A DNA stretch of 64,000 bases, from the sequence record OR545507.1; one strand, written 5' to 3'. A program made the position numbers and the translations under genes. Shown here piece after piece: positions 17,032-36,710 of this stretch. Position 1 is the stretch's first letter, and each line of letters opens with the position of its first letter. The notes below the pieces were generated by a model that had not been told where the DNA came from, did not search any database, and was given only the letters and a program-made list of their open reading frames with translations.

Positions 17032-17181
17032 TTTGAATCTCCTAACTTTGTGGGCCGTCGCACCATTGCCGCCCTACGAGATACATTATTGCAGTACTGA
17101 TATACTTTGTCAATACTTTTTTTATTAATAGTTTTCACCCCACCAGCAGATAGTTACTCACCGTTATTAACTATATATTTT

Positions 17182-17262
17182 AGATACACTCCTGCACCCA
17201 GTGGGCTAGTTTTTGTCTATGCGTATATAATAGCAAAGGGACTGACCGGAGTCAATCCCTTT
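17182..17262 (-). repeat. promoter-CCCANNGGGTGC element A (with terminator/promoter hairpin)
   Basis: GGGATTGAC-TCCG-GTCAGTCCC; TTGACT-N17-TATTAT; then GCCCACTGGGTGCAGGAGTGTATCT; no ORF. Confidence 0.8.
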
Positions 17263-17277
17263 TTTTATTCTTTTTTG

Positions 17278-17478
17278 TTAGATGATTCTCCAATCTTCTA
17301 CGATCATGGTAAGATAACGGACCATCGATTCAAGTGATTCGAATTCCCGATAGTCTGCCGCTCCACCAGCGGTACAAGTACAGCCGATTAAACCATTTTG
17401 TAATTCCTTAATCTGTACATCGATAAGGTTGGCTTTAGCTTCTTTCAGTACTTCAACCAGGGCGATAGCGATAGACAT
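17278..17478 (-). CDS. hypothetical early protein
   Basis: ORF behind promoter-stem-loop. Confidence 0.7.
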   Translation of the reverse strand: MSIAIALVEVLKEAKANLIDVQIKELQNGLIGCTCTAGGAADYREFESLESMVRYLTMIVEDWRII

Positions 17479-17567
17479 AATGTTTTACTCCAAACTATTG
17501 ACGGGAGAACTATTCCCCCGCTCTATGTAAAACATTATACATTACTGGTTAGTACTGTCAAATAGTT

Positions 17568-17825
17568 TTATGAAATATCTTCGATGTAGTCGGCCCATTT
17601 CATTTTTTCAGTACTGTCAATGGCTACCGGATTATTTGGATCAAACCATTCACCATTCCCGCAATACATACCCACGGCAACGGTTTTATATCCATCCTGT
17701 GCAGTACTCCACGACATAGCACGATAGATATGGCCTTTAACTGGTTGCAATACTGGTAATGTTTTATGGTCTTCTACGTAGGCCATAGCTTGAGGATTTA
17801 CCCGATATTGTGTGAACTGTTCCAT
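17568..17825 (-). CDS. hypothetical early protein
   Basis: ORF with own promoter and RBS. Confidence 0.7.
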   Translation of the reverse strand: MEQFTQYRVNPQAMAYVEDHKTLPVLQPVKGHIYRAMSWSTAQDGYKTVAVGMYCGNGEWFDPNNPVAIDSTEKMKWADYIEDIS

Positions 17826-17901
17826 TATGTTTCCCCTTGTAGTTAGTAAAGTTATTACATCAGTACTATCAAGCTATGTCAATAGTACTGAAATAAAACT
17901 T

Positions 17902-18126
17902 TTAGATTAGATTATTGATGCCGTTGATGGTAGACTCGCTTTCTTCTTTCTCCCATTGGCGGTAGTACTTCCATGCTTCATGATATGTGGCGATTAGTTC
18001 ATCTTTTTGATCCTGAGTACATGCCAGTACTGAATCACGGTGAGCGGTTTTATAGATAGAATCGAATGATTTCTTCTCTTCTGCCAGGTTAGCTACTTCC
18101 CGCATCAGTTCATCAAAGTTAGCCAT
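17902..18126 (-). CDS. hypothetical early protein
   Basis: ORF with GGAG RBS. Confidence 0.7.
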   Translation of the reverse strand: MANFDELMREVANLAEEKKSFDSIYKTAHRDSVLACTQDQKDELIATYHEAWKYYRQWEKEESESTINGINNLI

Positions 18127-18193
18127 TTTATTACTCCTTTTAGTGGGGGAGGATATCTCCCCCTATGCAAAACATTATACTTTGTTTTAGTTA

Positions 18194-18457
18194 TTATGCA
18201 AGTACTTTTTTCATATAAAGATTATATTCTACACCGCCGTAACCTTCTACGATGATATGTTTTGCGTTATCACGTTTGCACATAGTGAAACCGTTGTTGA
18301 TGTGTTCTGCATTTTCCAGGGCGACATCACCGATAGCGGCACATACGGCACTAATAACAGTATTCCGCAAAGTACTGGTATCATTAGCGGTCATAGTAGT
18401 TTGCAGTACTACGTTGTCGTATACGTGTGCATTGATAGTGATTTCGATAGTGTTCAT
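18194..18457 (-). CDS. hypothetical early protein
   Basis: ORF behind promoter-stem-loop. Confidence 0.7.
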   Translation of the reverse strand: MNTIEITINAHVYDNVVLQTTMTANDTSTLRNTVISAVCAAIGDVALENAEHINNGFTMCKRDNAKHIIVEGYGGVEYNLYMKKVLA

Positions 18458-18543
18458 GGTGTATCTCCTGGACTGGCGGGAGAACTATTCCCCCGCTCTA
18501 TGTAAAACATTATACGTTAATCTAACTACAATGCAAGTACTTT

Positions 18544-18735
18544 TTAAATTTTATTTCCGATATAGTCCGGTCTATTCTTTTCGGTCATACGCTTTGCTAA
18601 TGTTTGCATATGGCTTATTGCGTTTAATGTGTCTTCCTCCAGGGATGAATCAACATAATCAGGATCATTCTTCACCTTGCAATGATTATGATAGCGTAGT
18701 ACTGCCAGTACTTTTTTAACTTCTTCTACTGTCAT
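18544..18735 (-). CDS. hypothetical early protein
   Basis: ORF, ATGA overlap. Confidence 0.65.
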   Translation of the reverse strand: MTVEEVKKVLAVLRYHNHCKVKNDPDYVDSSLEEDTLNAISHMQTLAKRMTEKNRPDYIGNKI

Positions 18736-19004
18736 AATAAGTACCCCACTTCGTTAGCTTTCAGGTTAGTATCAATCATCAGTGGATTTTTGTAGTTCAC
18801 AAAACGATTAGTTTTCTCGATAGCGAATCCCATATAATCCAGCTTACTAACAGTACATTCATTCTTAAAAACTTCTTTCGCTGCATCGATGGCTGATTGC
18901 ATGGATAACCGACCATCTAAATTAATGTTTCCAAATGATCCACCAGCAGAAGTAGGATTACCGTTCATATCTTTAATGATCATAGTAGCGGAGTAGCTGG
19001 ACAT
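18732..19004 (-). CDS. hypothetical early protein
   Basis: ORF behind promoter-stem-loop. Confidence 0.7.
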   Translation of the reverse strand: MSSYSATMIIKDMNGNPTSAGGSFGNINLDGRLSMQSAIDAAKEVFKNECTVSKLDYMGFAIEKTNRFVNYKNPLMIDTNLKANEVGYLL

Positions 19005-19091
19005 AATTTTGTTTCCTTTTAGTATCGGGGAGAACTATTCTCCCCTTGATGTAAACTATTATACAGTACTGATATACTTTGTCAAATACTT

Positions 19092-19499
19092 TTATTCGCC
19101 CATATAGATTAAGTTATCATCGCCTACATAGGGATCGCAAACGTTGATTTCTTCGCAGTACTTCGTGAATACATCGCCATAGTGACCTAAACCACGATCC
19201 CAAAAACCAGTTCCGTGACCTTCGCGGGTAAGGAACAGATCATGACCAGCTTGCTCATAACCGTAATCAATAAACATACCGCGAACTACTTCCAGATCAT
19301 TACCGTGTTTCTCAATGAAGCGAGAACATGCAATCACCGCCGCTTGACGTGCTTCATCAGATAACTCATAATCTTCCAGGTAATCGCCGTTATCATTATG
19401 TACAGTACTGAATTGCATAGCTTCAATGTAAGCTACAACCATTGCAGCATGATTTTTATCGTTAGTGATGTTCCGAGCGAGATTAGTAGTAGTAGACAT
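19092..19499 (-). CDS. conserved phage hypothetical protein (GHD-F-LTR-GHG-GFWDRG motif)
   Basis: AGHDLFLTREGHGTGFWDRG; motif recalled from other phage early proteins, function unknown. Confidence 0.75.
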   Translation of the reverse strand: MSTTTNLARNITNDKNHAAMVVAYIEAMQFSTVHNDNGDYLEDYELSDEARQAAVIACSRFIEKHGNDLEVVRGMFIDYGYEQAGHDLFLTREGHGTGFWDRGLGHYGDVFTKYCEEINVCDPYVGDDNLIYMGE

Positions 19500-19582
19500 G
19501 ATTTTATTCCTTATTGTATTGGGGAGAACTATTCTCCCCTTGATGTAAACTATTATACAGTACTGATATACTTTGTCAATAC

Positions 19583-19804
19583 TTAATTACGTTTAAAATG
19601 ATATGTGCCTTTATCATCCTGTACGCCCCACACTGATTTACCATCAACACCAGTGAAACCGGATTGTAATTCAATATGGAAACCATTATTATCAACTACA
19701 AAAACTTTTTTATTTTCATCCCGATAACATTGATATTCTGAATCAACATTAAAGGCCGCATCATTCAGAAGATTGGAAGCGTAAATGCAAGTCATTGTAG
19801 TCAT
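19583..19804 (-). CDS. hypothetical early protein
   Basis: start MTTMTC after promoter-stem-loop. Confidence 0.7.
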   Translation of the reverse strand: MTTMTCIYASNLLNDAAFNVDSEYQCYRDENKKVFVVDNNGFHIELQSGFTGVDGKSVWGVQDDKGTYHFKRN

Positions 19805-19928
19805 GATTTTATTCCTTATTACCAGGGAGAACCATTTCCCCCTCTCTATGTAAAACATTATACTTGATTCTAAGTACAATGCAAGTACTTTTTATCAAAT
19901 AGTTTTCAGTACTGAATACTTATATAAT

Positions 19929-20012
19929 AGATACACTTCCGCACCCTATGGGTCAGTGAGTTATCTCTCAATGAATATATAATAGCAAAGGGACTGACCG
20001 GAGTCAATCCCT
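19929..20012 (-). repeat. promoter-CCCANNGGGTGC element B
   Basis: same terminator/promoter; GAG-AGATAA-CTC hairpin; ACCCATAGGGTGCGGAAGTGTATCT. Confidence 0.8.
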
Positions 20013-20025
20013 TTTTTAATCTTTT

Positions 20026-20610
20026 TTATCGTGTTACCTTACTTGCTTCTACATCACGCTTTTTATAGTACTGATTCCAGATATTGCGGGTTAAACCGTA
20101 ATCAAGTACTTTAATAAGGCCATTACGATCCTGGCCGATATTCTGTTTTCTGATATCTCTTATCGTTAGTGTTGATAATGTATCATCAACGTGTTGTAGT
20201 GCATCAGCAAAGCGGTGCTGGCGTTCAATGGCATTACGTTTAATATTGTACTTTAATTCATTGCACGCGTTTACGTGCTTTACACTGCCTTTACTTGCAG
20301 TACTCAACCGATCCATAACGATAAACATATTATCAGGATCGCATAAATGCATATGCACCTTTGCAAAGTACTGTTTCAATTGAGGGCGGTCATAATCTAA
20401 AAAATTCCATACCTTACATTCAGTTTCATTTTGTTCTACACCCGCATCACAATTCGCGACCTTGATCACTAACCGATCATTTAAAGCGAATACAATACGG
20501 GAAGAACCCGCACCGATGATCTCCAGACCAGCTAACCGACAAGCTGAAAGGATCTCTTTGTTGGTTTCCATTTCTGACAGGGTACGGATGAATTTAGTAT
20601 AATTACGCAT
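20026..20610 (-). CDS. minimal protein-kinase-like protein
   Basis: IGAGSSRIVF (Gly loop), LVIKVA, QNETE, RDIRKQN, VLDYG. Confidence 0.75.
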   Translation of the reverse strand: MRNYTKFIRTLSEMETNKEILSACRLAGLEIIGAGSSRIVFALNDRLVIKVANCDAGVEQNETECKVWNFLDYDRPQLKQYFAKVHMHLCDPDNMFIVMDRLSTASKGSVKHVNACNELKYNIKRNAIERQHRFADALQHVDDTLSTLTIRDIRKQNIGQDRNGLIKVLDYGLTRNIWNQYYKKRDVEASKVTR

Positions 20611-20641
20611 TGCATGTTCTCCTTGAGTTAATGAAACTATC

Positions 20642-20884
20642 TTACAGTACTTTACTATCAATGGCAACTACTTTTTTAACATTAACGGCGTGGATCACCT
20701 CCTTAGTGTTTTTAGTACTGAATACTTTCGCCGCCCCATTCACGACCGTGATACGATAGCGACCATTAACATCAACCATATTAATAAAGTCCGGCGTGCT
20801 GAATGGTGTTGTTTTACATTTGAGTACTGTTAACAATTCCACCAGCGATGTAGTTTCTTTGATACGTTTTTCTAAAGTAATCAT
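20642..20884 (-). CDS. hypothetical early protein
   Basis: ORF with TTGACA-N17-TACTAT promoter. Confidence 0.7.
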   Translation of the reverse strand: MITLEKRIKETTSLVELLTVLKCKTTPFSTPDFINMVDVNGRYRITVVNGAAKVFSTKNTKEVIHAVNVKKVVAIDSKVL

Positions 20885-20942
20885 TTTGTTTTTCCCCGTG
20901 TTGGTATGTACATATAGTACTAAAACATTTGAGTACTGTCAA

Positions 20943-21161
20943 TTAGATAATATTATATTTCTTAAAATAAAATGCGTCCTGTGTTGGTTGATACTCAATG
21001 CCATTGCCGTTATTGACTTCAACTAATAAACCTTTGTCAATAAGTTTTTTAATAGTACGATACCCTTGTTGAAAATTGGTAAAATGTGAATCATTACGAA
21101 AGGTATAACCGTGCTTAACTGCTTCATCAATAGTTTTCTTTTCGATTTTAGATAATTTCAT
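20943..21161 (-). CDS. hypothetical early protein
   Basis: start MKLSKIE; promoter duplicated from 20885 region. Confidence 0.7.
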   Translation of the reverse strand: MKLSKIEKKTIDEAVKHGYTFRNDSHFTNFQQGYRTIKKLIDKGLLVEVNNGNGIEYQPTQDAFYFKKYNII

Positions 21162-21214
21162 TTTGTTTCTCCCGTGTTGGTATATGTACATAGTACTAAA
21201 ACATTTGAGTACTG

Positions 21215-21469
21215 TCAACGTGATATTAGTTTTATTTTCTTATTATATTGTTGGTGTTCATATAGGTTTATCTTTCCTGTGTTCTCAATTACTATTCTGT
21301 TGTTAGTGTCCACATCGATTACACGCAGTTTCCCGTTGCTTAACTTCCTTGGTAATAGGTTACCATTAATAAACTCATTAGCAAGCTGTACGGCCTTTGT
21401 GATGATTCTCTTCGGTGCTTTATAGTGTACCCGTAAGATGTTATCTTTATATAGTTGAACCTTAATCAT
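21215..21469 (-). CDS. hypothetical early protein
   Basis: ORF. Confidence 0.65.
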   Translation of the reverse strand: MIKVQLYKDNILRVHYKAPKRIITKAVQLANEFINGNLLPRKLSNGKLRVIDVDTNNRIVIENTGKINLYEHQQYNKKIKLISR

Positions 21470-21486
21470 TTTGTTTGTCCTATAAA

Positions 21487-21509
21487 AAAGGCGGGAACTG
21501 ATCCCGCCG
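21487..21509 (-). terminator. rho-independent terminator
   Basis: GGCGGGA-N-TCCCGCC followed by TTTTT on minus strand. Confidence 0.65.
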
Positions 21510-21530
21510 TGTTGTTAGTACTGCAAGTTA

Positions 21531-21935
21531 TTAGATAACCTGGCGGCGTTTACTGAATACTGTTACACGATTACCCTTACGGTCGTGTCGGATCTCTTTC
21601 TGGTTGCGAATCAGTTCACTTGGACGCTTAAGGTTTGCCAGGTGATCCGCGTGAGTCCATGCGGTGTGGTTTACCTGTACTTTGATATCAGAATCAGCGA
21701 TAAACTCATCTTGTGCGTCAAGTATTGCCGCCAGCATATCCGCTCGTTTTAGTTCTGCTGCTGTCAGTACTGGCTCAGGTGAATTCACAATATCAGAGAT
21801 TTCTTTGAACTGTACGGCCCAGCGTTGACCTTTCGGTGCATCTTTGCCCATGTCTTTAAATGCTGCTCCTTCCTCGCGTGCAACAATACGGGCAGCTTCA
21901 CGGGTAGCGTAGAATTTAGTAATCATGGTATACAT
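21531..21935 (-). CDS. hypothetical early protein (paralogue of 33713)
   Basis: FYATREAARIVAR..FKDMG..RWA..DRKGNRVTV. Confidence 0.75.
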   Translation of the reverse strand: MYTMITKFYATREAARIVAREEGAAFKDMGKDAPKGQRWAVQFKEISDIVNSPEPVLTAAELKRADMLAAILDAQDEFIADSDIKVQVNHTAWTHADHLANLKRPSELIRNQKEIRHDRKGNRVTVFSKRRQVI

Positions 21936-22021
21936 CCTATTAGTTGAGATAGTACTACAAGTTAGAGTCTATTATAAAGTACTATCTGGGCAATGTCAAA
22001 TAGTACTTTAAATGGATTCTA

Positions 22022-22345
22022 TTACATGTCTTTCTTACGTTTTACATCGTAGTATCGAACTGTAATTTCTTTGTTGATCTCTTCCTCGATGCGGTGAATA
22101 ACTTTTTCTTTCGGGTTGAAACCTATAACGGTTTCTTTAATGATCTCCAAGCCCGTGTATTCGCCTTGTGTACCGTAACCGTATGTAAAGGTTTCGTGTC
22201 CCAGGTCTTCCCAGCGGTCGCCAATTAACGCTGACACGTAGCAAGAGTGGTAAGTATTGCCGTTCCGATCAGTCCAGCGATTAACTTTAATGTCAAAGGA
22301 GGTTACAATTTTCAGTTCTACTTTCTGGGTAAGGATCATAGCCAT
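22022..22345 (-). CDS. hypothetical early protein (paralogue of 28140)
   Basis: RWTDRNGNTYHSC..FTYGY..VKRKKDM. Confidence 0.75.
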   Translation of the reverse strand: MAMILTQKVELKIVTSFDIKVNRWTDRNGNTYHSCYVSALIGDRWEDLGHETFTYGYGTQGEYTGLEIIKETVIGFNPKEKVIHRIEEEINKEITVRYYDVKRKKDM

Positions 22346-22432
22346 TTTTATTTCTCTCTCTTTGTTAGGAGGGGAACCATTCCCCTCGCTTGATGTAAAC
22401 TATTATACAGTACTAAGATACTTTGTCAATAC

Positions 22433-22615
22433 TTATTTTTTGGAAAGTTTACGCATTAATTCTACGCTTTCTTGTGAACGTTTTGCTACCTGGCAAGCTG
22501 TATGGGCAGTAAACATTTTTGTATAGTCTGACGCTTTGCCACCAAACCGAGCGGCACGTTCACGGGCACTTGGAACTAATACTATTTCTTTCTTGCAGAT
22601 AGTGCACTTAGCCAT
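22433..22615 (-). CDS. small Cys/His-containing protein
   Basis: CxxC...HxxC; start MAKC. Confidence 0.7.
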   Translation of the reverse strand: MAKCTICKKEIVLVPSARERAARFGGKASDYTKMFTAHTACQVAKRSQESVELMRKLSKK

Positions 22616-22703
22616 TTTTATTTCTCTCTCTTTGTTAGGAGGGGAACCGTTTCCCCTCACTTGATGTAAACTATTATACAGTACTAAGATACTTTATCAA
22701 TAC

Positions 22704-22979
22704 TTAAGTATTGTAAATGTCGTGAATAGTGATAAAGTTTTTACGACCGTAAACCTGCAAATCAATATCAATGTAGTGCTTATCTAGTACATCCTCGACG
22801 CTTAACGCGGTGTCGTGGATATCTTCGTAGAATTGAGGATCTACAATCTTGCTTAAGTCATCCGGCGTTAACTTATCGTTAAGCCATTGAACCGCCTGGA
22901 TATCTGCTTCACGTTTCCAGTCTTCCAGGTTAGTAGTCAGTACTTGTTCGATTTCGTTAGCTGTCAGTAGAATCCGCAT
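22704..22979 (-). CDS. hypothetical early protein
   Basis: ORF with own promoter. Confidence 0.7.
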   Translation of the reverse strand: MRILLTANEIEQVLTTNLEDWKREADIQAVQWLNDKLTPDDLSKIVDPQFYEDIHDTALSVEDVLDKHYIDIDLQVYGRKNFITIHDIYNT

Positions 22980-23048
22980 TTTTATGTTTCCTTATCAGTG
23001 GTTGATGTAAGTATTATACTCGTTTACTTTCTATTGTCAAACTATTTT

Positions 23049-23126
23049 ATCAGGGGAGTTTTTCGTATGTCTTACTCCTGGACTACTTAACAGGGTTACT
23101 TATTTCGTTCCCCGTCCTGATGTAAA
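23049..23126 (-). ncRNA. candidate structured small RNA, copy 1
   Basis: consensus promoter, no ATG, near-identical copy at 33037, hairpins. Confidence 0.5.
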
Positions 23127-23202
23127 ACATTATACTTGATTCTAAGTACAATGCAAGTACTTTTTTAAAAATAGTTTTCAGTACTAGCCACCAGCAAACA
23201 AT

Positions 23203-23283
23203 AGATACATTTATGCACCCTGTGGGCTGATTTGTTTCTATGCGTATATAATAGCAAAGGGACTGACCGGAGTCAATCCCTTT
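23203..23283 (-). repeat. promoter-CCCANNGGGTGC element C
   Basis: same terminator/promoter; GCCCACAGGGTGCATAAATGTATCT. Confidence 0.8.
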
Positions 23284-23720
23284 TTCAAATATTTTTAAAC
23301 TTCTTTCGGGTTGCGATAGGTGATAGCGTTCGGGTACATTTGTTTAATGTTATTCCATGCCTGGTTAACATTATAACCACTTGAGCGAATCAGTTGGTTA
23401 CTACCGACACCTTGAAACACTACTTCGAATAAGAATTCTTTCATGCTTTCACCTCGCTATCTGCTTTACCTTTACGCCAGGACATTACTAATTGTTCGCG
23501 TTGCCATAAGTCGAGTGATACAAAAAGTTTTGCGGTATCACTTTTAGGATACTCGCCAGTAGTACCTAACCGATAAAACAGATCTTTCAGTACTGATAAT
23601 TCTACTTGAATCATTTTATTACTCCTGATTGCGTTAATACTTCTACTATTGCATGAATGATCATAAGTACAGCTAACACAATAATCATCGGATTCATTTG
23701 CATAAGCTGTACTCCTTATA

Positions 23721-23933
23721 TTAATCTTTCAGCCAATGATCTTGAATGAATTTTTCACCGTATCCCTGTTTCATGGATTCTAACAGGCGTTCGCGGTGAG
23801 CGGCGGCATATTGCTCAGTACTATGCGTTACGCCAGGCTGATAACGTGATACCCCATCCGGTCCGATGTATTGTACATCCCACGGTTTTTCGTTAGTATC
23901 AGACCATTTACGAACGATTAGTTGACCTTGCAT
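23721..23933 (-). CDS. hypothetical early protein
   Basis: ORF behind promoter-stem-loop. Confidence 0.7.
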   Translation of the reverse strand: MQGQLIVRKWSDTNEKPWDVQYIGPDGVSRYQPGVTHSTEQYAAAHRERLLESMKQGYGEKFIQDHWLKD

Positions 23934-24016
23934 TTTTCTTTCCTCTCAGTGGGGAGAATCATTTCTCCCCTTCATGTAACTTATTATACAGTACTAGATT
24001 ATCTTGTCAATAGTTT

Positions 24017-24340
24017 TTATTCACCTTGTTTGAATTTAGTTTTCTCCATTGATTCCATGATTGCAACCAATACGCTGTGGATCTCGCTTAACGCGGAATC
24101 ACTGAAAGCATTAATGAATAGTCGATCATTCTCGCGAATATTTTTAATGTACTTTTCAGCAGTAGTTGCGAATTCATTCAACGGTAGATCAAATGCTTTA
24201 TCCCATGATGGATGGCGTAATTGTAACAGTACTGGATTATCACGATCACCAGGGGAAAACGTACCAGTGATGAAACATACGCCCGGAATACTTTCGAACT
24301 GGCAACGGACTTCCTTTGTGATAGTAGTATGAATGTACAT
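24017..24340 (-). CDS. hypothetical early protein
   Basis: ORF with GAGG RBS. Confidence 0.7.
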   Translation of the reverse strand: MYIHTTITKEVRCQFESIPGVCFITGTFSPGDRDNPVLLQLRHPSWDKAFDLPLNEFATTAEKYIKNIRENDRLFINAFSDSALSEIHSVLVAIMESMEKTKFKQGE

Positions 24341-24367
24341 TTATTGTTATCCTCTATTAAATTAATA

Positions 24368-24562
24368 TTACAGTTTATGAATCAATTCTTTATCTAAGCG
24401 ATAGCGTACATTATTAATAGTAACGGCATTGTTTTTAATGCTACGCTGTACAGGTCCACCAGCAATAACAAATGTTGCTTTATTACCCCGAACAATGATA
24501 GCACTTCCAGGATTACCGAAATCATCTTGTACTAAAATACTTGATAAGTTTTCCATTTTCAT
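24368..24562 (-). CDS. hypothetical early protein
   Basis: ORF behind promoter-stem-loop. Confidence 0.7.
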   Translation of the reverse strand: MKMENLSSILVQDDFGNPGSAIIVRGNKATFVIAGGPVQRSIKNNAVTINNVRYRLDKELIHKL

Positions 24563-24637
24563 TTCCTCTTAGTAGGGGAAGATGTTTCCCCTTGATGTAA
24601 GTACTATAACACTACTGGATAGTACTGTCAATACTTT

Positions 24638-28782: not shown

Positions 28783-29010
28783 TTAATTTAATTCATCCAG
28801 GCAAAGGATACGCTCAACGCCCAAATCAGTTAAACTAATCGACGGCACTTGATAGGTTTCAATGTATGCTACACTTGCCCACTGACCGAACTCATTAACG
28901 GCCCAGGTATTCATTGCATTTTGCAATTCCGCACCTTCCTTGTTGGTAATTACAGCAACAGTAGAAGAATTACCAGTAGTACCAGATACGCGAGTGATTA
29001 CGATAGCCAT
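28783..29010 (-). CDS. hypothetical early protein
   Basis: ORF with own promoter. Confidence 0.7.
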   Translation of the reverse strand: MAIVITRVSGTTGNSSTVAVITNKEGAELQNAMNTWAVNEFGQWASVAYIETYQVPSISLTDLGVERILCLDELN

Positions 29011-29445
29011 TTTTTAATTCCTATTCAGTAGTTGATGTATGTATTATGTCAGTACTTAAAACTATTGTCAAACTATTTTTTAAAGTTTATCAATGATTGA
29101 TGCCGTTTCATTGATAGTCTTGCCGTGTTTTGCACACGCGATAACTGCTTTAAATTCCTTTGATGACCAATCTTTCTTGCTGCATACTGACATTACTTGT
29201 AAAGTAAAACAATCCAGTTCATAAGTATTCATCTTTAAATCCTCAGTTAGTTAAGGTGTCTCGCCTTGATGTAATTAATTATACGCTAATCTCTTAATCG
29301 TGCAAGTACTTTTTATTACTTTTTGCAAAATACTTTAAACGCTCTCAATCGCATTCTAACGACCTTAACTCCACCAGCTAGGGCGATGTATCAGATAATC
29401 AGTTTAATGCGTTAGGCGGTGCTAGTGGACTGGAATACTATAGAC

Positions 29446-29488
29446 ACAAAAAAGCCCACTGTTTAAGGTGGGCTAGTGATTCAGTACT
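29446..29488 (-). terminator. terminator, 43-bp direct repeat copy 1
   Basis: AGCCCAC-CTTAAACA-GTGGGCT-TTTTT; identical copy at 30182. Confidence 0.75.
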
Positions 29489-29495
29489 TTAATTT

Positions 29496-29978
29496 TTATG
29501 CTTCAACTTTGCGATGAGCTTCGATCCATTCCTCGCGAGTCATACCGCTTTCTTTGATAGCGTCCAGTACTACCGCAATGCAGTTACCGCGTACAGGAAT
29601 CAAATGTTCTTCCCCGTTATCAAGTACTACCGCTACACGTTCCTGAATCCATTTTTTAGGCTTAGATTCCGGCTTATCTTCACCATACTTAACCGCCAGG
29701 GCTTTATGTGCCATTTCCACAACCACTTCCAGATCCAATCCAGACACTGCCGCCTGAATACTTTCAATTGTTGCTTGTAGTTCTGCTTCACGGGCTTTTT
29801 TCTGTTCTTCCAGTTCTGCTACCTTTTTGGCTTGCAGTTCTTTCGCAGTACTGTACGCAATGTTAAAATTGTTGCGTACCGCTTTCATGGTATCGCTATC
29901 CAGTTCAGCCAGGATTTCTGCCGCTACGTTAGTTTCATTTGCTACCAGTGCTTTGATGAATGATTTTACATTAGCCAT
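29496..29978 (-). CDS. H-NS/StpA-like protein (divergent)
   Basis: coiled-coil N-half; C-terminal VLDNGEEHLIPVRGNCIAVVLDAIKESGMTREEW aligns by eye with H-NS [34 protein letters not shown]. Confidence 0.55.
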   Translation of the reverse strand: MANVKSFIKALVANETNVAAEILAELDSDTMKAVRNNFNIAYSTAKELQAKKVAELEEQKKAREAELQATIESIQAAVSGLDLEVVVEMAHKALAVKYGEDKPESKPKKWIQERVAVVLDNGEEHLIPVRGNCIAVVLDAIKESGMTREEWIEAHRKVEA

Positions 29979-30181
29979 TTTATAAATCCTCAATTAAAGT
30001 TTAGTTTACGTTAGATAGTGTATCAAAGTTTTCTCGACGTGTCCAGTTTTTCGTTCGACTTACTGGCGGTCTACTTAGTGCTCCCCGTCTTGATGTAATA
30101 CATTCTACGCTTTTCTGTGGTAATGTCAACTACTTTTTTAAAACTATTTTTAAAGTATCTCAGTACTACGATACTACAAAA

Positions 30182-30224
30182 ACAAAAAAGCCCACTGTTT
30201 AAGGTGGGCTAGTGATTCAGTACT
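30182..30224 (-). terminator. terminator, 43-bp direct repeat copy 2
   Basis: identical to 29446-29488. Confidence 0.75.
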
Positions 30225-30227
30225 AGA

Positions 30228-30527
30228 TTATAAACAGTTAATTACTCCGGTGTGCGTTACTTTCTCAGTATCCATAACCGTGACCGATCCACGCTTAGTA
30301 CTGGCATCATAATAAATTGTGGTGCTACCGTTTTCGTCTTCTTCATGGAACGGGCCGTTTTTAAATGCTTCCGGCTGGATCTCTAAATCCTTTAATACAA
30401 TCTCGCCAGTTCTTTCATCGGTCATTGCAACAGTGCACTGAATGAATTTTTCATTACTTACATCTAATGACGCATTAACAGCGAAAGAGGAAACAGATAA
30501 AGCCAGGGCGATGATTGCAATTTTCAT
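30228..30527 (-). CDS. predicted exported protein
   Basis: Sec-type signal MKIAIIALALSVSSFAVNA. Confidence 0.7.
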   Translation of the reverse strand: MKIAIIALALSVSSFAVNASLDVSNEKFIQCTVAMTDERTGEIVLKDLEIQPEAFKNGPFHEEDENGSTTIYYDASTKRGSVTVMDTEKVTHTGVINCL

Positions 30528-30611
30528 TTGATTATCCTTAGTTACCAGGGGGAACCGCTCCCCCTTGCTATGTAAAATATTATACAGTACTAAAAACTAA
30601 TTGCAAGTACT

Positions 30612-30848
30612 TTATGATTTTTTATAAAACATTTCGGCAGTGATATTTTTACCCGTTGGCTGTACTTTATCCAGAATTTTTTGATGCCCTGGCCGTCCAA
30701 ATGAATATGATCCGTAAACCGTAAACCAGTAGTTACCCTCAGTGTTTACATGTACAGCACAATAGGGAACGCCCCGCGATTCATCACTAGTAAAGTGTGC
30801 TACCGTTCCCGTTACATTCGAAGTCGTTGATTTGATTTGTTCAAGCAT
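30612..30848 (-). CDS. hypothetical early protein
   Basis: ORF behind promoter-stem-loop. Confidence 0.7.
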   Translation of the reverse strand: MLEQIKSTTSNVTGTVAHFTSDESRGVPYCAVHVNTEGNYWFTVYGSYSFGRPGHQKILDKVQPTGKNITAEMFYKKS

Positions 30849-30955
30849 TTTCTTATTCCTTAGTTACCAGGGGAACCGCTCCCCTATGCAAAACATTATA
30901 CGCGTTTAAAAACTAATAGCAAGTATTTTAATAAAAAGTATTTGGAAAATAATTG

Positions 30956-31030
30956 TTGACAAGTGCATCCAGTACTGGCATAATTACTACATCAAGACGA
31001 AACAGTCACTAACCCACCGGGTGCATAGAT
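30956..31030 (+). repeat. promoter-CCCANNGGGTGC element F
   Basis: TTGACA-N17-CATAAT; GAC-GAAACA-GTC hairpin; ACCCACCGGGTGCA. Confidence 0.8.
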
Positions 31031-31062
31031 CCGTCTATTAAATGATTCAGTACTGAAAAAGT

Positions 31063-31090
31063 AACGGGGAGTTATTATCTCCCCGCGTTG
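31063..31090. terminator. hairpin between convergent transcripts
   Basis: CGGGGAG-TTATTAT-CTCCCCG. Confidence 0.65.
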
Positions 31091-31312
31091 TTATTTTGTA
31101 AGGTATAAACAGAAGTCACCTTTATTTGCTACGCCGCCAGTGTAACGCGATGAATAGTTAGAAATATCTTGTACTTCTGCTATTACCAGTGTATCATCAT
31201 TCATTTCGTCGCAGAAGCAAACGGCTGGATCTTTTACGCCGATATTGTCGGCATGTTCCCGCATAGATTTAACCAGTGCTTCCAGTTGAGAAAGAGTAGT
31301 GATATTAGCCAT
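31091..31312 (-). CDS. hypothetical early protein
   Basis: start MANITT after promoter-stem-loop. Confidence 0.7.
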   Translation of the reverse strand: MANITTLSQLEALVKSMREHADNIGVKDPAVCFCDEMNDDTLVIAEVQDISNYSSRYTGGVANKGDFCLYLTK

Positions 31313-31398
31313 TGTATTTTCCTCATTACCAGGGAGAACCATTTCTCCCCTCTATGTAAACTATTATACAGTACTGAAAACTAATTGCAAGTACTTTT

Positions 31399-31602
31399 TT
31401 AATTTAATTGCTTTAAAACATACTCAAAGACACCACGCACATCATTGATCATCGCCTGGCGGTTAGCAGGTAACGCATCAGGATCGCCACTATCCCAGGC
31501 ATTGATAAAACTCCCCAAATCATGATAGATTTTATTCTGTAAGCCGATTAACTGTAATTCTTTTTCTTCAAGCTCTTTGATGCGGTCGATTAAATCACTC
31601 AT
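31399..31602 (-). CDS. hypothetical early protein
   Basis: start MSDLIDR. Confidence 0.65.
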   Translation of the reverse strand: MSDLIDRIKELEEKELQLIGLQNKIYHDLGSFINAWDSGDPDALPANRQAMINDVRGVFEYVLKQLN

Positions 31603-31619
31603 TAGATAATCCTCAGTAC

Positions 31620-31904
31620 TTAACTGTAAGATCCGCAACGGTCGCAGTAGTGCCCGTCCTCGTCATCGTCAACGAATTGACCGACGAAATGATCTACTTT
31701 CGCTTTCAGGTTATTATAATCGTTTTCTACTTCATTTAAACGCTTCTGGTAGTATTCCAGTGCTTTAAGATATGCCGCATCAGCAGTTTTCTCCTGCATA
31801 GCTAAATTCATGCCACGCGTTTCATCGTACAGCCAAAAACCATCGGTGCACTGGCTAATAGATAATGACTTGCTTAGTACTGTATAGTTAATTACTTTAC
31901 CCAT
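31620..31904 (-). CDS. hypothetical early protein
   Basis: ORF; C-terminal CxxC. Confidence 0.7.
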   Translation of the reverse strand: MGKVINYTVLSKSLSISQCTDGFWLYDETRGMNLAMQEKTADAAYLKALEYYQKRLNEVENDYNNLKAKVDHFVGQFVDDDEDGHYCDRCGSYS

Positions 31905-31996
31905 TAGATAATCCTCAGTAAAGGCGGGAACTATTCCCCGCCTCGATATAAAGTATTATACGTTAATCTAACTACAATGCAAGTACTTTTTAAATT

Positions 31997-32263
31997 TTAT
32001 AATCCTTTTACTGCATCAGGTGCGACTACTCCATCAATGTATTGAACATCGTTTTCAACTTCACGGGCGGCATCATTCAGCAGATCAAAATTAAATTCCA
32101 TTTCTTCCAGATCATCGAAATCAGGCTCATAACCATTAATTGTTGAATAAGTCCAAGTACCTTTTTCATAAGTTACGACACTTACATCAGGGAAGAAATC
32201 TTGCACATGATCCATCGCATCCCGAACCAATTGATGTGCAGTTGTGATATTTAAAGTTTTCAT
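31997..32263 (-). CDS. acidic hypothetical early protein
   Basis: ORF behind promoter-stem-loop. Confidence 0.7.
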   Translation of the reverse strand: MKTLNITTAHQLVRDAMDHVQDFFPDVSVVTYEKGTWTYSTINGYEPDFDDLEEMEFNFDLLNDAAREVENDVQYIDGVVAPDAVKGL

Positions 32264-32356
32264 TTTGTTGCCCTTTTAGTGTGAGCGGGGAACCACTCCC
32301 CGCCTCGATGTAAAGTATTATACGCTTTTAAACTTAGTTTGCAAGTACTTTTTAAA

Positions 32357-32968
32357 TTAATATGCGATTGATTCTACTACGTCATCAATAACATTGAATT
32401 GATATTCGTTACCCTCAATCAGTGCCGTAATGTTTTCAGTAGTGAATTGATCCTCATATGCATTCTCTAAATCACGGTACAACTTGCGGGATAATTCACG
32501 AATAGTTTCAGTGAGTAGTTCCTCAAGCTCATTAACTAACGTTTCTTGTTTTGCGGTTAAATCAGTGTAAGCCGATTCAATGTACCCGCTTACAGTATTC
32601 TCATGCGAGTAGTGGGAGTGAGAACGCTTTACACTCATCGCCAAATCATCTTCATTCAGCAGGTGACGGATTGAGCGATACTTAGTTAATGCTCTTACCT
32701 TGCGTAAAAACTTCACTGCGTCAACGTGGTCAGTACTGATTGATGCACCGTCACCCTGGGACCAAAAACCACTGAATTGTATTTCAGCTTCATTAATGCC
32801 ATATTCCGGTAGTACTGTTTCTTTATAGTATTCAATTTCACTTTCAGAAAAATAATTGTCGTTTGAGTTTTTTTCACGTTCCCGAACCAGTTCGATAGCT
32901 GACGTTTTTTGTTCTGCGTTCAATTCAGAAAAATCCATAACGAAAGTAGTAGTAGTGATAGTTTTCAT
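32357..32968 (-). CDS. SGFWSQGDG-motif protein (family often labelled antitoxin-like in mobile elements)
   Basis: DFSELNAEQK...IQFSGFWSQGDGAS; family label recalled, not verified. Confidence 0.6.
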   Translation of the reverse strand: MKTITTTTFVMDFSELNAEQKTSAIELVREREKNSNDNYFSESEIEYYKETVLPEYGINEAEIQFSGFWSQGDGASISTDHVDAVKFLRKVRALTKYRSIRHLLNEDDLAMSVKRSHSHYSHENTVSGYIESAYTDLTAKQETLVNELEELLTETIRELSRKLYRDLENAYEDQFTTENITALIEGNEYQFNVIDDVVESIAY

Positions 32969-33036
32969 TTTGTAACCCTCATTCAGTAGTTGATGTAAGT
33001 ATTATACGCTTTTAAAAACATTTGTCAAACTATTTT

Positions 33037-33116
33037 ATCAGGGGAGTTTTTCGTGTGCCTTACTCCTGGGCTACTTAACGGGAAGTTACTTATTTCGTTC
33101 CCCGTCCTGATGTAAA
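33037..33116 (-). ncRNA. candidate structured small RNA, copy 2
   Basis: as 23049; stem variants keep pairing. Confidence 0.5.
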
Positions 33117-33191
33117 ACATTATACGCCTTTAAACATAGTTTGCAAGTACTTTTTAAAAATAGTTTTCAGTACTGAATATTTAAAAAAGTA

Positions 33192-33255
33192 TTGACAGCA
33201 TTATCAAGTACTGGCATAATATACCCCATGACAACAGCTAACCCACCGGGTGCAC
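33192..33255 (+). repeat. promoter-CCCANNGGGTGC element G
   Basis: TTGACA-N17-CATAAT; ACCCACCGGGTGCA; converges on E. Confidence 0.8.
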
Positions 33256-33286
33256 AATTGTAACTATACTAAACTACTTTTTCTAT

Positions 33287-33364
33287 AGATACACTCCCGC
33301 ACCCTATGGGCTACGGCTTATCTGCCAATGAATACATTATGCCAGTACTGACAAAATAAGTCAA
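33287..33364 (-). repeat. promoter-CCCANNGGGTGC element E
   Basis: TTGACT-N17-CATAAT; GGC-AGATAA-GCC; GCCCATAGGGTGCGGGAGTGTATCT. Confidence 0.8.
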
Positions 33365-33394
33365 TACCGGCAATTGTAAAGATTTGTAAACTGC

Positions 33395-33625
33395 TTATAC
33401 TGCAATCGCGTCCAGGCTATAATAATAATAAGTGCCGTATTGGTGTACTTTATTACCTTTTATTTCAGTACTGAATGAATCCGAACGGTTTGCATATGAT
33501 GTTAATTTAAAGTACTTTGATTTGCTGATACGTTGCCATACACCGCAGATCCGCTGTAAGTAAGTAGTTTTATTCGTGGTAGTATCTTTTACAGTTTTAA
33601 CTTCAGTCATATACATATTAGTCAT
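33395..33625 (-). CDS. hypothetical early protein
   Basis: ORF behind promoter-stem-loop. Confidence 0.7.
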   Translation of the reverse strand: MTNMYMTEVKTVKDTTTNKTTYLQRICGVWQRISKSKYFKLTSYANRSDSFSTEIKGNKVHQYGTYYYYSLDAIAV

Positions 33626-33712
33626 TTTTATTACTCCAGGTTATAGGCGGGAAGAGTTCCCGCTCTCGATGTAAAACATTATACGCCATTAAACATAGTT
33701 TGCAAGTACTTT

Positions 33713-33979
33713 TTATTCAAGTACTGCAATCTTTTTAGTACGGTACACGGTCACGCGGTTGCCCTTTCGGTCGAGCTTTATTTCTACCACTCGACGCGAT
33801 ACACTATCAGGACTTTTCAACGCCGCTAACCAGTACTGTAATGATCTGGCGGTACTACGCTTTATAATGGCCCAACGTTTACCACGTTCCGATTGTACGC
33901 CCATATCTTTAAACGTTGCCCCGTCCTGGCGTGCGGCGATCCGAGCTTGTTCACGCGTCGCAAAATACTTAATATTCAT
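33713..33979 (-). CDS. hypothetical early protein (paralogue of 21531)
   Basis: YFATREQARIAAR..FKDMG..RWA..DRKGNRVTV. Confidence 0.75.
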   Translation of the reverse strand: MNIKYFATREQARIAARQDGATFKDMGVQSERGKRWAIIKRSTARSLQYWLAALKSPDSVSRRVVEIKLDRKGNRVTVYRTKKIAVLE

Positions 33980-34064
33980 GCTGTTGCCCTTATCGTTGGT
34001 GTATGAATAAAACACTATTATAAAGTACTATCGCAAAAAATGATAGTACTTTAAATAAATTCTA

Positions 34065-34304
34065 TTACATTCCAACCATTGCAGCACGGATCGCAGTAGT
34101 GCTATATTTGAATCCGTCCGGCGTTTTATCTTGTCCAGTCTGTTCTAAAAATAACATCATATGACGGGCCGCATCATTACGATTAGTATTGGCGGCAATA
34201 AAGTCCTGGGCCAACCGGTATAATGATTCATCGTTATTAATCCAAAGGCTTACATTCCAATGAGTTTTGTTTTTGTGACCTAAGAACATTTTTGATTTAG
34301 CCAT
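34065..34304 (-). CDS. conserved phage hypothetical protein
   Basis: GHKNKTHWNVSLWINNDE...TPDG..YS...IRAAM; motif recalled from other phages. Confidence 0.75.
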   Translation of the reverse strand: MAKSKMFLGHKNKTHWNVSLWINNDESLYRLAQDFIAANTNRNDAARHMMLFLEQTGQDKTPDGFKYSTTAIRAAMVGM

Positions 34305-34397
34305 TTTTTTAATCCTCTTATATAGTGGGGAACTATTCCCCACCTGATGTAAAACATTATACGCTTTTAAACATAGTTTGCAAGTACTTTATTAAAC

Positions 34398-34760
34398 TTA
34401 TTCGTAAATTTTGCCACTGTCAGCCCATACCAGGAAACGAGGCATATTATCCCATGCATCTTGTTTTAAATTTAAACCGTGTAATACTTCTGTACTTTCC
34501 ATTCCTGGTACTGGTTTACTATACACCGCGAAATTTTCGCCCATATACTGATAAACCATCGTCAAATCACTGGCGATCATCTTATGGATCATCGCATCAA
34601 GCATCACGGTAGCGGCGTATTGTTCACGCTTAAGCGGCAACATTGTAATAAGTTCCCGATAAGCTGAAATGTGAATTTTTACCGTTTCAGCCGGAAGACC
34701 TTTCATCTCTTCACGGAAGTTGACCAGGTTAGAAATAATTTTATTGATTTGGGTCGCCAT
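34398..34760 (-). CDS. hypothetical early protein (first gene of the early run)
   Basis: start MATQINK after promoter-stem-loop. Confidence 0.7.
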   Translation of the reverse strand: MATQINKIISNLVNFREEMKGLPAETVKIHISAYRELITMLPLKREQYAATVMLDAMIHKMIASDLTMVYQYMGENFAVYSKPVPGMESTEVLHGLNLKQDAWDNMPRFLVWADSGKIYE

Positions 34761-35079
34761 CGTATTAATCTCTTTTAAAGTGTAGCGGGAAGTGTTCCCG
34801 CTCTCGATGTAAAACATTATACGCCTTTAAACATAGTTTGCAAGTACTTTCTACATGTACTTTTAAAATAGTTTTCTTTCTATATAGGGGAACTATCATT
34901 CAGTACTATTATTCAGTACTGAATCAACCAAATCACTACTACACCCCATAAAACGGCCTCAGACGCATTCTAACGCATTAATACACCTAAGCTATACATT
35001 TGCACCATTCCAATCATTCCAGGGCTTTACGGGCCGTTTAAACGCGTTAAATTATTTTCAATTATTTTGTTTTTAGCTA

Positions 35080-35167
35080 TTGACTCAGTACAGAAAAAGC
35101 GTATAATTACTACATAGACGCGAGAAAGCGGAAACCCCAGAGGGTGCGGAATTACGCCCAAAATTCA
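35080..35167 (+). repeat. promoter-CCCANNGGGTGC element H
   Basis: TTGACT-N16-TATAAT; CGC-GAGAAA-GCG; CCCCAGAGGGTGCGG. Confidence 0.8.
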
Positions 35168-35180
35168 AGATATAAAAAAA

Positions 35181-35262
35181 GGATACACTCCCGCACCCTA
35201 GCAGGTAAACGCACTTTCTCAGTACTGAAATATAGTACCATAGTCCGGCCCAGGATAGCAAG
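35181..35262 (-). repeat. promoter-GGGTGC element I (degenerate left arm)
   Basis: CTAGGGTGCGGGAGTGTATCC; TACTAT -10 upstream; converges on H. Confidence 0.7.
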
Positions 35263-35295
35263 CAAATTAATTAAAACTTTTTTGCTTCCAGGGTA

Positions 35296-35382
35296 TTGCT
35301 TTATTTTTTCAGTACTGTATAATAGTTCCATCAAGTCGAGAAAGACTCAAGCCCACCGGGTGCATAGTTACGCCCAAAATTC
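35296..35382 (+). repeat. promoter-CCCANNGGGTGC element J
   Basis: TTGCTT-N16-TATAAT; GTC-GAGAAA-GAC; GCCCACCGGGTGCA. Confidence 0.8.
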
Positions 35383-36710
35383 AGTACTGAAAAAATTTTT
35401 AAAAATATCCGTCCAGGCCGTTGACATTGCCCCCAGTTTATAAGATAATGATTCCAGATTCAGAAAAATCTAACTCCAGATACTGCGGGGAAACTATCCC
35501 CACGCGGTAGGGGAACTATTGGAAAAAACAAAATAAAATTTTGATTTAGCCGTCTATACTTCCAGACGTGTAACCATCTAGCCGTTTAGCCGTCCAAACG
35601 TCTAGCCATCCAGAAATCTAGCCGTCTAGATGGATAGCCATCTTTACTTCCAGACTTCTGGAGGGCTAGACATATCTACGCCCAAAATCCATCCAGGGTA
35701 ACTACACCCAAAATCCGTCAGTACTATACCATAGATCTATCTTTTGAAAGGGAGTATTCAGTACTGCCATCATAGCCCTCACTATGTTACCCTAGGAGGA
35801 TGAAGACCATCATGTAGTACTGAATACTGTTAGAGGGAATCCACCAGCACAAGCTGGTGGTATAATGCTTTAGATTAAAATCAGTACTGACACCATTCTG
35901 TTAATATCAGTACTGTTATTACGATTTTCATATGAGGTTCAAAAAGATGTACCACCACAGGAGGAACTATCTTTTCTGTACTGTCTCACGACAGGAGGTA
36001 GAGTAAATGAATTGTTCGCAGCAACTCATCACCCCTTGAAGCTATGTAGAACATTATACAGTACTGAATCATAATGTCAATAGCTTTCTTTCATTATTCA
36101 GTACTGATATTCTTGAGAACTACCCGACTACAAACATCATTATATCCCACAAATCATAAACGTCCCAACGTAAATTTCAACTTTCGAAGATCCAACTTTT
36201 ATTTCATAGGTACTCCAAAATTTTTAGGATCGAGATTTAGGATGGAGTACTAACCAACTTTTTGCTGGAGCCTCAAGGGGTAATTGAATTTTACCCCGAA
36301 GGGTAAAAGGGTAATTGTAATTAAGGTGAAAGTAATAATTCAGTACTAATCATTGCGTGATTACTTTTGATTACATTTGATGTAATTTGCAAAATGGAAA
36401 AGGAGCTTGGAAACTACAAAGTACGGCAGACTTCCTCTGCCTACTTAGTGGCATATCAGTACTGAATCATTCACACACATTTCCGTGCATTCTTGTCTAT
36501 ACTAATCAGTACTGAATCATATATAATCATTCTGTGATTCTACGGTGCTCATATAAATGTTTATATATGATTACTTATGACTACCTATGATTACGGGGTT
36601 TAGCCTGGGGAGAATCCTAGTGATCGCATTTGTCCAGGCTGAATTTTAACATATGCAACATATGTTAAAGCCTGTATAATGCTTCCACTACGGAGCTTCC
36701 CCTAGCTATA

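Follow-up and report, generated by a model that had tools for sequence, protein, structure and literature searches.

Oriented Chi octamers are clustered in the 20.7-kb direct terminal repeat of the virulent jumbo phage Sharanji

Why should the early region of a virulent jumbo phage be crowded with copies of Chi, the octamer at which the host enzyme RecBCD changes its behaviour, and why should nearly all of them lie on the same strand? The question is raised by the first 64 kb of Escherichia phage Sharanji (OR545507.1; 350,079 bp), a virulent jumbo myovirus that belongs to Asteriusvirus and has E. coli K-12 MG1655 as a host (sequence record; PMC11895373). Comparison with the whole record places the window, by which we mean the entire 64,000-nucleotide stretch analysed, at bases 1-64000, and in a megablast search part of the region was 100% identical both to Sharanji (OR545507.1) and to phage vB_EcoM_G17 (MK327931.1; G17 below). 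It is established that RecBCD binds double-strand DNA ends and degrades the DNA until it meets Chi, after which it yields a 3' tail and loads RecA (PMC12315714, among other sources), and a passage of PMC13181404 gives GCTGGTGG as the octamer used by the RecBCD of enteric bacteria. Chi is taken here as this exact octamer, with the reverse complement CCACCAGC, and was located by exact search on both strands.

The window contains 13 copies of GCTGGTGG, where dinucleotide-preserving shuffles have 0.58 on average and at most 3, and ten of the 13, nine on the minus strand and one on the plus strand, fall within positions 15778-36445, which form the direct terminal repeat (DTR) of the phage. By the Sharanji annotation five of the nine minus-strand copies are intergenic (17140, 23188, 25169, 29371 and 35841) and the other four are coding (17363, 18940, 20839 and 24456). 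An earlier reading of the window, made from its letters only (the sequence-only reading), had reported eight minus-strand copies between 17.1 and 35.9 kb, five of them intergenic and one, at 25169, built into a hairpin, together with a perfect inverted repeat of two Chi sites at 35841-35860, and had put the expected number well below 1. All of this agrees with what we find except the count, which is nine rather than eight, the copy in the inverted repeat apparently having been tallied apart. The sites are as follows.

17140..17147, minus strand: Chi, intergenic; the first from the left end of the repeat, 1,362 bp in
17363..17370, minus strand: Chi, coding, GCT-GGT-GGA (Ala-Gly-Gly) in gp055
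18940..18947, minus strand: Chi, coding, GCT-GGT-GGA in gp060
20839..20846, minus strand: Chi, coding, CTG-GTG (Leu-Val) in gp064
23188..23195, minus strand: Chi, intergenic, just upstream of an early-promoter motif whose 5' end (minus strand) is at 23161
24456..24463, minus strand: Chi, coding, GCT-GGT-GGA in gp076
25169..25176, minus strand: Chi, intergenic, in the 3' arm of the terminator-like hairpin at 25166..25191
29371..29378, minus strand: Chi, intergenic; left partner of a second inverted Chi pair found in relatives
29421..29428, plus strand: decayed Chi, GCTAGTGG; relatives have GCTGGTGG at the same position
35841..35848, minus strand: Chi, intergenic, left half of the palindrome; the last Chi in the repeat from the left end
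35853..35860, plus strand: Chi, right half of the palindrome; the first from the right end, 585 bp in
49764 and 50022, plus strand, and 52297, minus strand: Chi outside the cluster, from the exact search of the window; the two plus-strand copies lie within Gly-rich coding repeats (GGT-GCT-GGT-GG) and are codon-driven

The limits of the cluster are those of the DTR, whose position is fixed by several kinds of evidence. In the G17 record the same 20,668 bp stand at both termini, with 0 mismatches between the copies, and map to 15778-36445 of the window, and the DTR of Sharanji determined by PhageTerm is exactly 20,668 bp (PMC11895373). A terminal redundancy of about 20 kb was assigned to G17 from coverage (PMC6563267), and phage fEgEco12 has a DTR of 20,993 bp with ends confirmed by restriction digestion (PMC13070987). 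When the repeat was compared with GenBank phages, position 15778 fell on the final base of the repeats annotated in fEgEco12 and vB_Ec-M-J (the latter repeat is 21,525 bp long, with a left boundary identical to that of Sharanji), and position 36445 aligned with base 1 of the CRJP21 and E9.1 records. In four public sequencing runs of related isolates the contig depth inside the repeat (17.2-19 kb) was 1.7-2.1 times that of the contig entering from outside, a comparison based on assembled contigs only, with no read starts, which is consistent with the published termini and does not itself resolve the repeat boundary.

15778..36445, both strands: direct terminal repeat, 20,668 bp, from the G17 duplicate, the published PhageTerm result, the ends of relatives and contig depth

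The repeat is also the early region of the phage, with about 50 small genes, every one of them on the minus strand. Its G+C content is 38.4%, as against 33.8% in the rest of the genome, and the 35% of it that is non-coding holds more Chi than the coding part. A comparison of the repeat with 5,426 complete E. coli genomes gave no match, which shows that it does not derive from the host.

Chi density in the repeat is above that of the host and far above the expectation from composition. The genome as a whole holds 29 copies, ten of them in the 5.9% that the repeat occupies (binomial P = 3.6e-6), which gives 0.48 per kb in the repeat and 0.058 per kb in the other 329 kb; the density quoted for E. 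coli is 0.217 per kb. No other 20.7-kb window of the genome has more than 4 Chi, and positions 9300-15710, immediately left of the repeat, have none. On the minus strand of the repeat the nine copies compare with 0.11-0.33 expected under Markov models of orders 0-4, and among the 168 permutations of the Chi letters none but Chi itself exceeds 2 copies there. Chi ranks among the 20 most over-represented octamers in the repeat, and nearly all of those above it are parts of a promoter cassette or of CAGTACTG. Outside the repeat there are nine plus-strand and ten minus-strand copies, with no strand bias, and Chi is not commoner than GGTGCTGG; the related octamers GGTGCTGG and GGTGGTGC are elsewhere as frequent as Chi or more so, yet are not enriched in the repeat.

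The excess is found in coding and non-coding DNA alike. The 50 repeat genes carry four coding Chi against 0.45 expected, a number reached in 0 of 2000 synonymous-codon shuffles, and all three of the Ala-Gly-Gly tripeptides that they encode are spelled as Chi (GCT-GGT-GG). The 7.25 kb of intergenic DNA in the repeat carries six, against 0.023 expected. Only four one-mismatch variants of Chi stand beside the ten perfect copies, whereas chance would produce many more near-misses than perfect sites. The ten sites have no flanking sequence in common, so the excess does not come from one repeated cassette. Counts by strand over the whole genome confine the excess to the repeat, where no permuted octamer matches it, and the density of Chi is neither uniform over the genome nor at the level that Ala-Gly-Gly codons predict. 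Promoter and leader cassettes share the region with Chi.

16664..34848, minus strand: 18 near-consensus sigma-70 early promoters (AGTACTTGCA-N17-TATAAT)
16632, 17503, 18478, 19028, 19522, 19825, 26971, 28715 and 31332, minus strand: leader stem-loops

The leader is a conserved stem-loop, GGGGAGAA-AUAG-UUCUCCCC, which follows nine of the 18 promoters a few bases past the -10 hexamer and just upstream of the ribosome-binding site; its 3' arm, GTTCTCCC, has nine minus-strand copies in the repeat and one in the remaining 329 kb.

The orientation of the sites acquires a meaning from the mapped ends. RecBCD coming from a double-strand end must approach the octamer from its 3' side (Subramaniam and Smith), and with ends at 15778 and 36445 the nine minus-strand Chi therefore face the left end and the single plus-strand Chi faces the right. 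Entry from the left (15778) leads to the first Chi after 1,362 bp and offers nine chances before the repeat is left behind, the last of them being the minus half of the palindrome, while entry from the right (36445) meets one plus-strand Chi, after 585 bp. From orientation alone the sequence-only reading had deduced a DNA end to the left of about 17 kb and another to the right of 35853, which it took to fit a linear genome with this module as its terminal repeat; both ends lie where it placed them. Its alternative, a replication origin near 35-36 kb, finds no support, for reasons set out below. That the sites are so unevenly divided between the two directions suggests greater exposure of the left end, and by analogy with phage T5 the repeat may enter the cell left end first.

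Two of the intergenic locations are parts of secondary structures. One of these structures belongs to the non-coding stretch that closes the repeat on the right, where a short periodic array stands about 170 bp away from it.

35841..35860, both strands: Chi palindrome CCACCAGC-ACAA-GCTGGTGG, a perfect inverted repeat, folding with -16.1 kcal/mol
25166..25191, minus strand: terminator-like hairpin, 11-bp stem, -21.8 kcal/mol, z = -4.4; annotated as a terminator in G17
34818..36445, both strands: non-coding right edge of the repeat, about 1.6 kb, with the palindrome, an array of 8-bp period and many CAGTACTG
35545-35672: the array, about 16 units with 8-bp periodicity and a consensus near TCTAGCCG

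The palindrome was labelled a terminator by the annotators of G17. No run of T residues that could give a U-tract follows the 35841-35860 hairpin on either strand, as an intrinsic terminator would have, and the palindrome is most simply read as one location that offers an active Chi to enzymes arriving from either direction. A scan of IMG/VR for Chi palindromes with any 4-nt loop returned 46 contigs, roughly the chance level, of which only 121Q is related. The hairpin at 25166-25191 recurs in Salmonella phage SE_PL and Klebsiella phage fENko-Kae01 with an identical loop and Chi and with compensatory changes in the stem.

Comparison with relatives shows that the sites are maintained, and that in the more distant phages it is the pattern rather than the individual positions that is kept. 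A search of IMG/VR by way of a repeat-encoded protein found 121Q as the sole related locus, and the relatives used here were taken from GenBank phage records. All ten Chi are kept in vB_Ec-M-J and in Salmonella phage SD-15_S21, and most are kept in 121Q and TH47 though the flanks are only 84-90% identical. The site at 17140 persists in these four phages and in EJP2, even where flank identity is 79-90%; that at 23188 is present in every relative examined, EJP2 included; and the palindrome is kept in vB_Ec-M-J, SD-15_S21, TH47 and 121Q. The 17363 site is absent from 121Q, and no alignable homologue of it was found in TH47. In vB_Ec-M-J, SD-15_S21 and TH47 the 29371 site is followed, about 60 bp further right, by a second plus-strand Chi, the same one that has decayed to GCTAGTGG in Sharanji. 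Over six relatives the octamer columns are changed in 12 of 337 cells and the flanks in 563 of 7279 (Fisher P = 0.0015), a value that is indicative only, as the relatives are not independent of one another.

EJP2, a divergent member of Asteriusvirus, shares only scattered blocks of the repeat with Sharanji and nevertheless has, in the region that corresponds to it, seven minus-strand Chi and one plus-strand Chi, where at most 0.3 would be expected. Three of the seven align with Chi of Sharanji, and the rest lie in sequence that is unaligned or that aligns elsewhere. At its right edge a plus-strand and a minus-strand Chi 95 bp apart take the place of the palindrome, so that the octamer has been kept and the hairpin has not. 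SE_PL lies outside the genus, and about 3% of the repeat aligns with it; its early region carries 14 minus-strand Chi and one plus-strand Chi, with none in the 7.3 kb to the left of that region. In fENko-Kae01 the repeat, mapped by PhageTerm, is 19,736 bp long and contains 14 Chi, 12 on the sense strand and two opposite, with correctly oriented sites at 483 bp from one end and 375 bp from the other; the 25 kb beyond the repeat hold two, so the cluster is bounded by the mapped repeat. Both of these phages have the palindrome with the loop TTAA instead of ACAA, and in both of them Chi is found in promoter spacers (three copies end 2 nt before the -10 hexamer), in the terminator hairpin and in coding sequence, places that can accommodate it. 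Maintenance of the octamer, of its confinement to the repeat and of its polarity, while positions turn over, is the signature of selection acting on Chi itself. The cluster is, moreover, a practical marker of the terminal repeat in the many related genomes that have been deposited without mapped ends.

The ten octamers are thus probably genuine Chi sites that selection has kept in the 20.7-kb DTR, where they would convert RecBCD while it is still inside the repeat. The hosts of these phages are E. coli K-12, Salmonella and Klebsiella. The sequences themselves show the sites, their enrichment, their confinement to the repeat, their orientation towards the mapped ends and their maintenance in evolution; we infer that RecBCD acts on the ends of the injected DNA and recognizes Chi there, and that the benefit driving selection may be protection, recombination or a limit on the uptake of spacers by clustered regularly interspaced short palindromic repeat (CRISPR) systems. 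In the sequence of events that we propose, host RecBCD would load on either DNA end after injection and would meet nine oriented minus-strand Chi from the left, the first at 1.4 kb, or one plus-strand Chi from the right, at 0.6 kb. On recognition it would switch from degrading the DNA to producing a RecA-coated 3' tail, which could then invade or anneal with the other copy of the repeat; whatever lies beyond a Chi has its duplicate at the opposite end, so a tail primed at Chi would have a homologous partner. The repeat would act as an expendable and repairable buffer that holds RecBCD back from the unique part of the genome, and recombination of repeat with repeat, starting there, would give circles or concatemers for replication. 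The authors of the fEgEco12 study guessed at recombination between the repeats after entry, without mention of Chi (PMC13070987).

A broader form of the proposal can be offered tentatively, and we regard it as doubtful in its full extent. Virulent jumbo phages with genomes of about 350 kb, namely Asteriusvirus together with the lineage of SE_PL and fENko-Kae01, might as an entire clade use a 20-kb repeat as a Chi-armed, self-repairing buffer in which RecBCD is converted at either end and a RecA filament joins the repeats, so that the first step of infection would depend on host RecBCD, Chi and RecA despite the phages' own recombinase; the 9:1 asymmetry would then reveal the end that is exposed first.

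End-proximal clusters of oriented Chi are already known from P1-like phages and from some lambdoid phages. In P1, P7 and D6 (Subramaniam and Smith; Zheng et al. 2025 PMC12315714) Chi has about twice its E. coli density, is clustered where virion ends fall and is common in non-coding DNA, and the role proposed in P1 is like that suggested here, with RecBCD-Chi-RecA recombination of the terminal repeats circularizing the injected DNA. P1 is temperate, packages by the headful with variable ends, has a near-random Chi orientation and is known to need RecA and RecBCD. Sharanji, in contrast, is a jumbo phage of 350 kb, virulent and fixed in its ends; its Chi cluster is confined to a 20.7-kb repeat at 9:1 polarity and includes a palindrome, and the phage has a recombinase of its own. 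In the lambdoid phage LLS, in the lambdoids described as having 'no Rec module, many Chi' and in Pseudomonas phage MD8 (PMC12315714), Chi lies near one end and is mostly active from that end; in the LLS group, as here, the density exceeds that of the host, which has been read as positive selection for Chi. LLS has cohesive ends, lacks recombination genes and a RecBCD inhibitor, and is measurably helped in its growth by RecBCD, whereas in Sharanji the Chi sites lie in a duplicated repeat that serves both ends, and recombination proteins are encoded. Work on P1 and LLS speaks for recombination between terminal repeats, stimulated by Chi, no less than for the passive protection through mimicry of the host's self-marks that the sequence-only reading had suggested.

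T5 resembles Sharanji in other respects, having a long DTR with the earliest genes, host-type promoters, leftward transcription and a non-coding, repeat-rich inner edge. The injection-stop region of that inner edge may be compared with 34818-36445 of Sharanji, or with the array at 35545-35672, as a positional analogy only. T5 has a two-step injection and the proteins A1 and A2, whereas the PHROG matches of the 50 proteins encoded in the Sharanji repeat include none annotated as A1, A2 or DNA transfer, and two-step injection is not known for Asteriusvirus. How the first-entering end of T5 escapes RecBCD is an acknowledged open question. The same PHROG search matched none of the 50 to a RecBCD inhibitor or end protector (the Gam, Abc2 and gp5.9 families), and as 49 of the 50 are without known function a novel inhibitor is possible; a DksA-like zinc-finger protein is the only one named. 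In a search of the open-access and bioRxiv literature no description of oriented Chi clusters was found for Asteriusvirus, for other jumbo phages or for fixed long terminal repeats. What is new in the present case is that the cluster is confined to a defined repeat, is strongly polar, includes a conserved Chi palindrome, and occurs in virulent phages that also encode recombinases.

Several points weigh against a role for RecBCD and Chi at these ends. The polarity is confounded with the direction of transcription and with the G-rich sense strand: composition predicts about 74% of sites on the minus strand, and against that expectation the 9:1 ratio of Sharanji alone is not significant, though the distinct sites pooled from three lineages give about 26:3 (P = 0.036). 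With one active Chi at the right end, and a second decayed in Sharanji, protection there would be weak. The annotation of the phage lists a RecA/UvsX-like recombinase, an SbcD-like exonuclease subunit and a RecD-like helicase, and these recombination genes make the rule of 'no Rec module, many Chi' of the lambdoid phages inapplicable. The 10.2-kb terminal repeat of T5 has only two Chi (8127 and 8689), both on the plus strand and facing right, with none facing the left end that enters first, so a Chi cluster is not general to phages with long repeats. No experiment linking RecBCD to these phages was found in the open-access and bioRxiv literature.

Other explanations of the cluster have to account for its position and its polarity as well as for its density. 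The strand switch of Chi at 35841/35853 coincides with a switch in gene strand and in GC skew, and it falls within 1.6 kb of non-coding DNA that includes an iteron-like array of 8-bp period, as would befit a bidirectional origin near 35-36 kb with Chi on the leading strand of each arm, where it would rescue collapsed forks. The E. coli chromosome is arranged in that way, with the same octamer on the leading strand of each replichore and a strand switch at one point; its Chi sites, however, extend over whole replichores and are largely tied to coding sequence, whereas those of Sharanji occupy 20.7 kb only and are more frequent in non-coding than in coding DNA. On the minus strand the enrichment does not extend beyond the repeat. 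Leftward from 15778 the nearest Chi is 39 kb away and on the plus strand, and to the right there is no Chi for 13 kb, after which come the plus-strand copies in Gly-rich codon repeats. The sign of the GC skew flips at each block of gene strand (36-56, 198-218 and 225-237 kb), so the skew follows the genes and does not mark an origin, and in fENko-Kae01 the cluster is limited by the mapped repeat. An origin as the reason for the cluster is, on this evidence, decidedly unlikely. It is scarcely credible that chance or composition produced it, with a higher G+C content, Ala-Gly-Gly codons or copies of a repeated cassette yielding the excess. The repeat is indeed richer in G+C, and promoter and leader cassettes are abundant in it, but every null model misses the observed number by more than 10-fold, the flanks are not shared, and GGTGCTGG and GGTGGTGC are not enriched alongside Chi; we regard this explanation as refuted.

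The octamer could instead be the binding site or a structural element of some factor other than RecBCD, such as a regulator of early transcription or a terminator stem, its identity with Chi being coincidental. Its co-orientation with transcription, the copy in the terminator-like hairpin, the annotation of the G17 palindrome, the sites in promoter spacers of SE_PL and fENko-Kae01, and the fact that palindromes are typical of the sites of dimeric DNA-binding proteins would all agree with this. Coincidence would nevertheless be needed to explain why the exact 8-mer is the Chi used by the hosts, Escherichia, Salmonella and Klebsiella. The octamer is absent from all 18 early promoters of Sharanji, stands in no fixed relation to genes, promoters or terminators, and has four copies in coding sequence, where it is read in two frames; the palindrome lacks a U-tract, and EJP2 has retained the octamer in the absence of the hairpin. 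We give this alternative a very slim chance. A further possibility accepts the sites as Chi and differs in the benefit. CRISPR spacers are taken up from the stretch between a free DNA end and the first Chi in the proper orientation, and the geometry described here would cut the interval open to uptake to 0.6-1.4 kb, so that the cluster may have been selected mainly to limit the RecBCD fragments released from an injected end and hence the acquisition of spacers. This is compatible with conversion of RecBCD inside the repeat and does not exclude it, and in many E. coli hosts the CRISPR systems are silent; as the main cause of selection it seems unlikely.

The repeat and its surroundings have other features that deserve mention. 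The array at 35545-35672 could be an iteron, a packaging signal or an element like an injection stop. Nearby, the plus strand has two copies of a 79-nt element that are 71% identical (35101-35179 and 35317-35395), each directly behind a plus-strand promoter-like TTGNNN-N16-17-TATAAT and without a match in Rfam; judged by sequence they are candidate small RNAs, which would be transcribed against the early genes. A search of 15-41 kb matched no Rfam family. The octamer CAGTACTG, a palindrome, has 199 copies genome-wide, of which 33 lie in the repeat (1.6 per kb, as against 0.5 elsewhere), where an order-3 Markov model leads one to expect about 4; it is present in coding and intergenic DNA and could be a site for a phage DNA-binding protein. 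Short segments of the repeat have 81-90% DNA identity to phages of about 137-155 kb that belong to other genera (muut, tuntematon, W70, A73, ECGD1, PHB05 and others), which suggests that early genes have been exchanged between unrelated coliphages.

On either side of the repeat the window contains families of related genes. To the left, 9300-15710 is a run of back-to-back minus-strand open reading frames (ORFs) of about 70 residues with overlapping stops and starts, which resembles an array of small paralogous genes. To the right, 36446-40800 holds a tandem family of ORFs of about 61 residues in units about 190 bp apart, with positive GC skew although the ORFs are annotated on the minus strand. 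Beyond it, at 40817-55060, are more than 10 paralogous plus-strand genes of about 380 residues, one annotated as an RCC1-repeat protein and at least one with the Gly-rich runs that give rise to the copies at 49764 and 50022; Chi on the plus strand is likewise found in the homologous arrays of SE_PL and EJP2.

The survival of exposed DNA ends in the face of RecBCD during the first seconds of infection is unsettled even for T5, and this group of phages offers an answer at the level of sequence. As Sharanji grows on MG1655, the idea is directly testable with existing rec mutants of E. coli K-12. If it is true, Chi-driven recombination of terminal repeats, described for temperate phages of the P1-like and lambdoid kinds, would be extended to virulent jumbo phages with recombinases of their own, the large terminal repeat would gain a function beyond gene dosage, and the recurring Chi palindrome would be explained as a single site that serves RecBCD from both directions. 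It would also define a dependency on the host that is relevant to the use of such phages against E. coli, Salmonella and Klebsiella.

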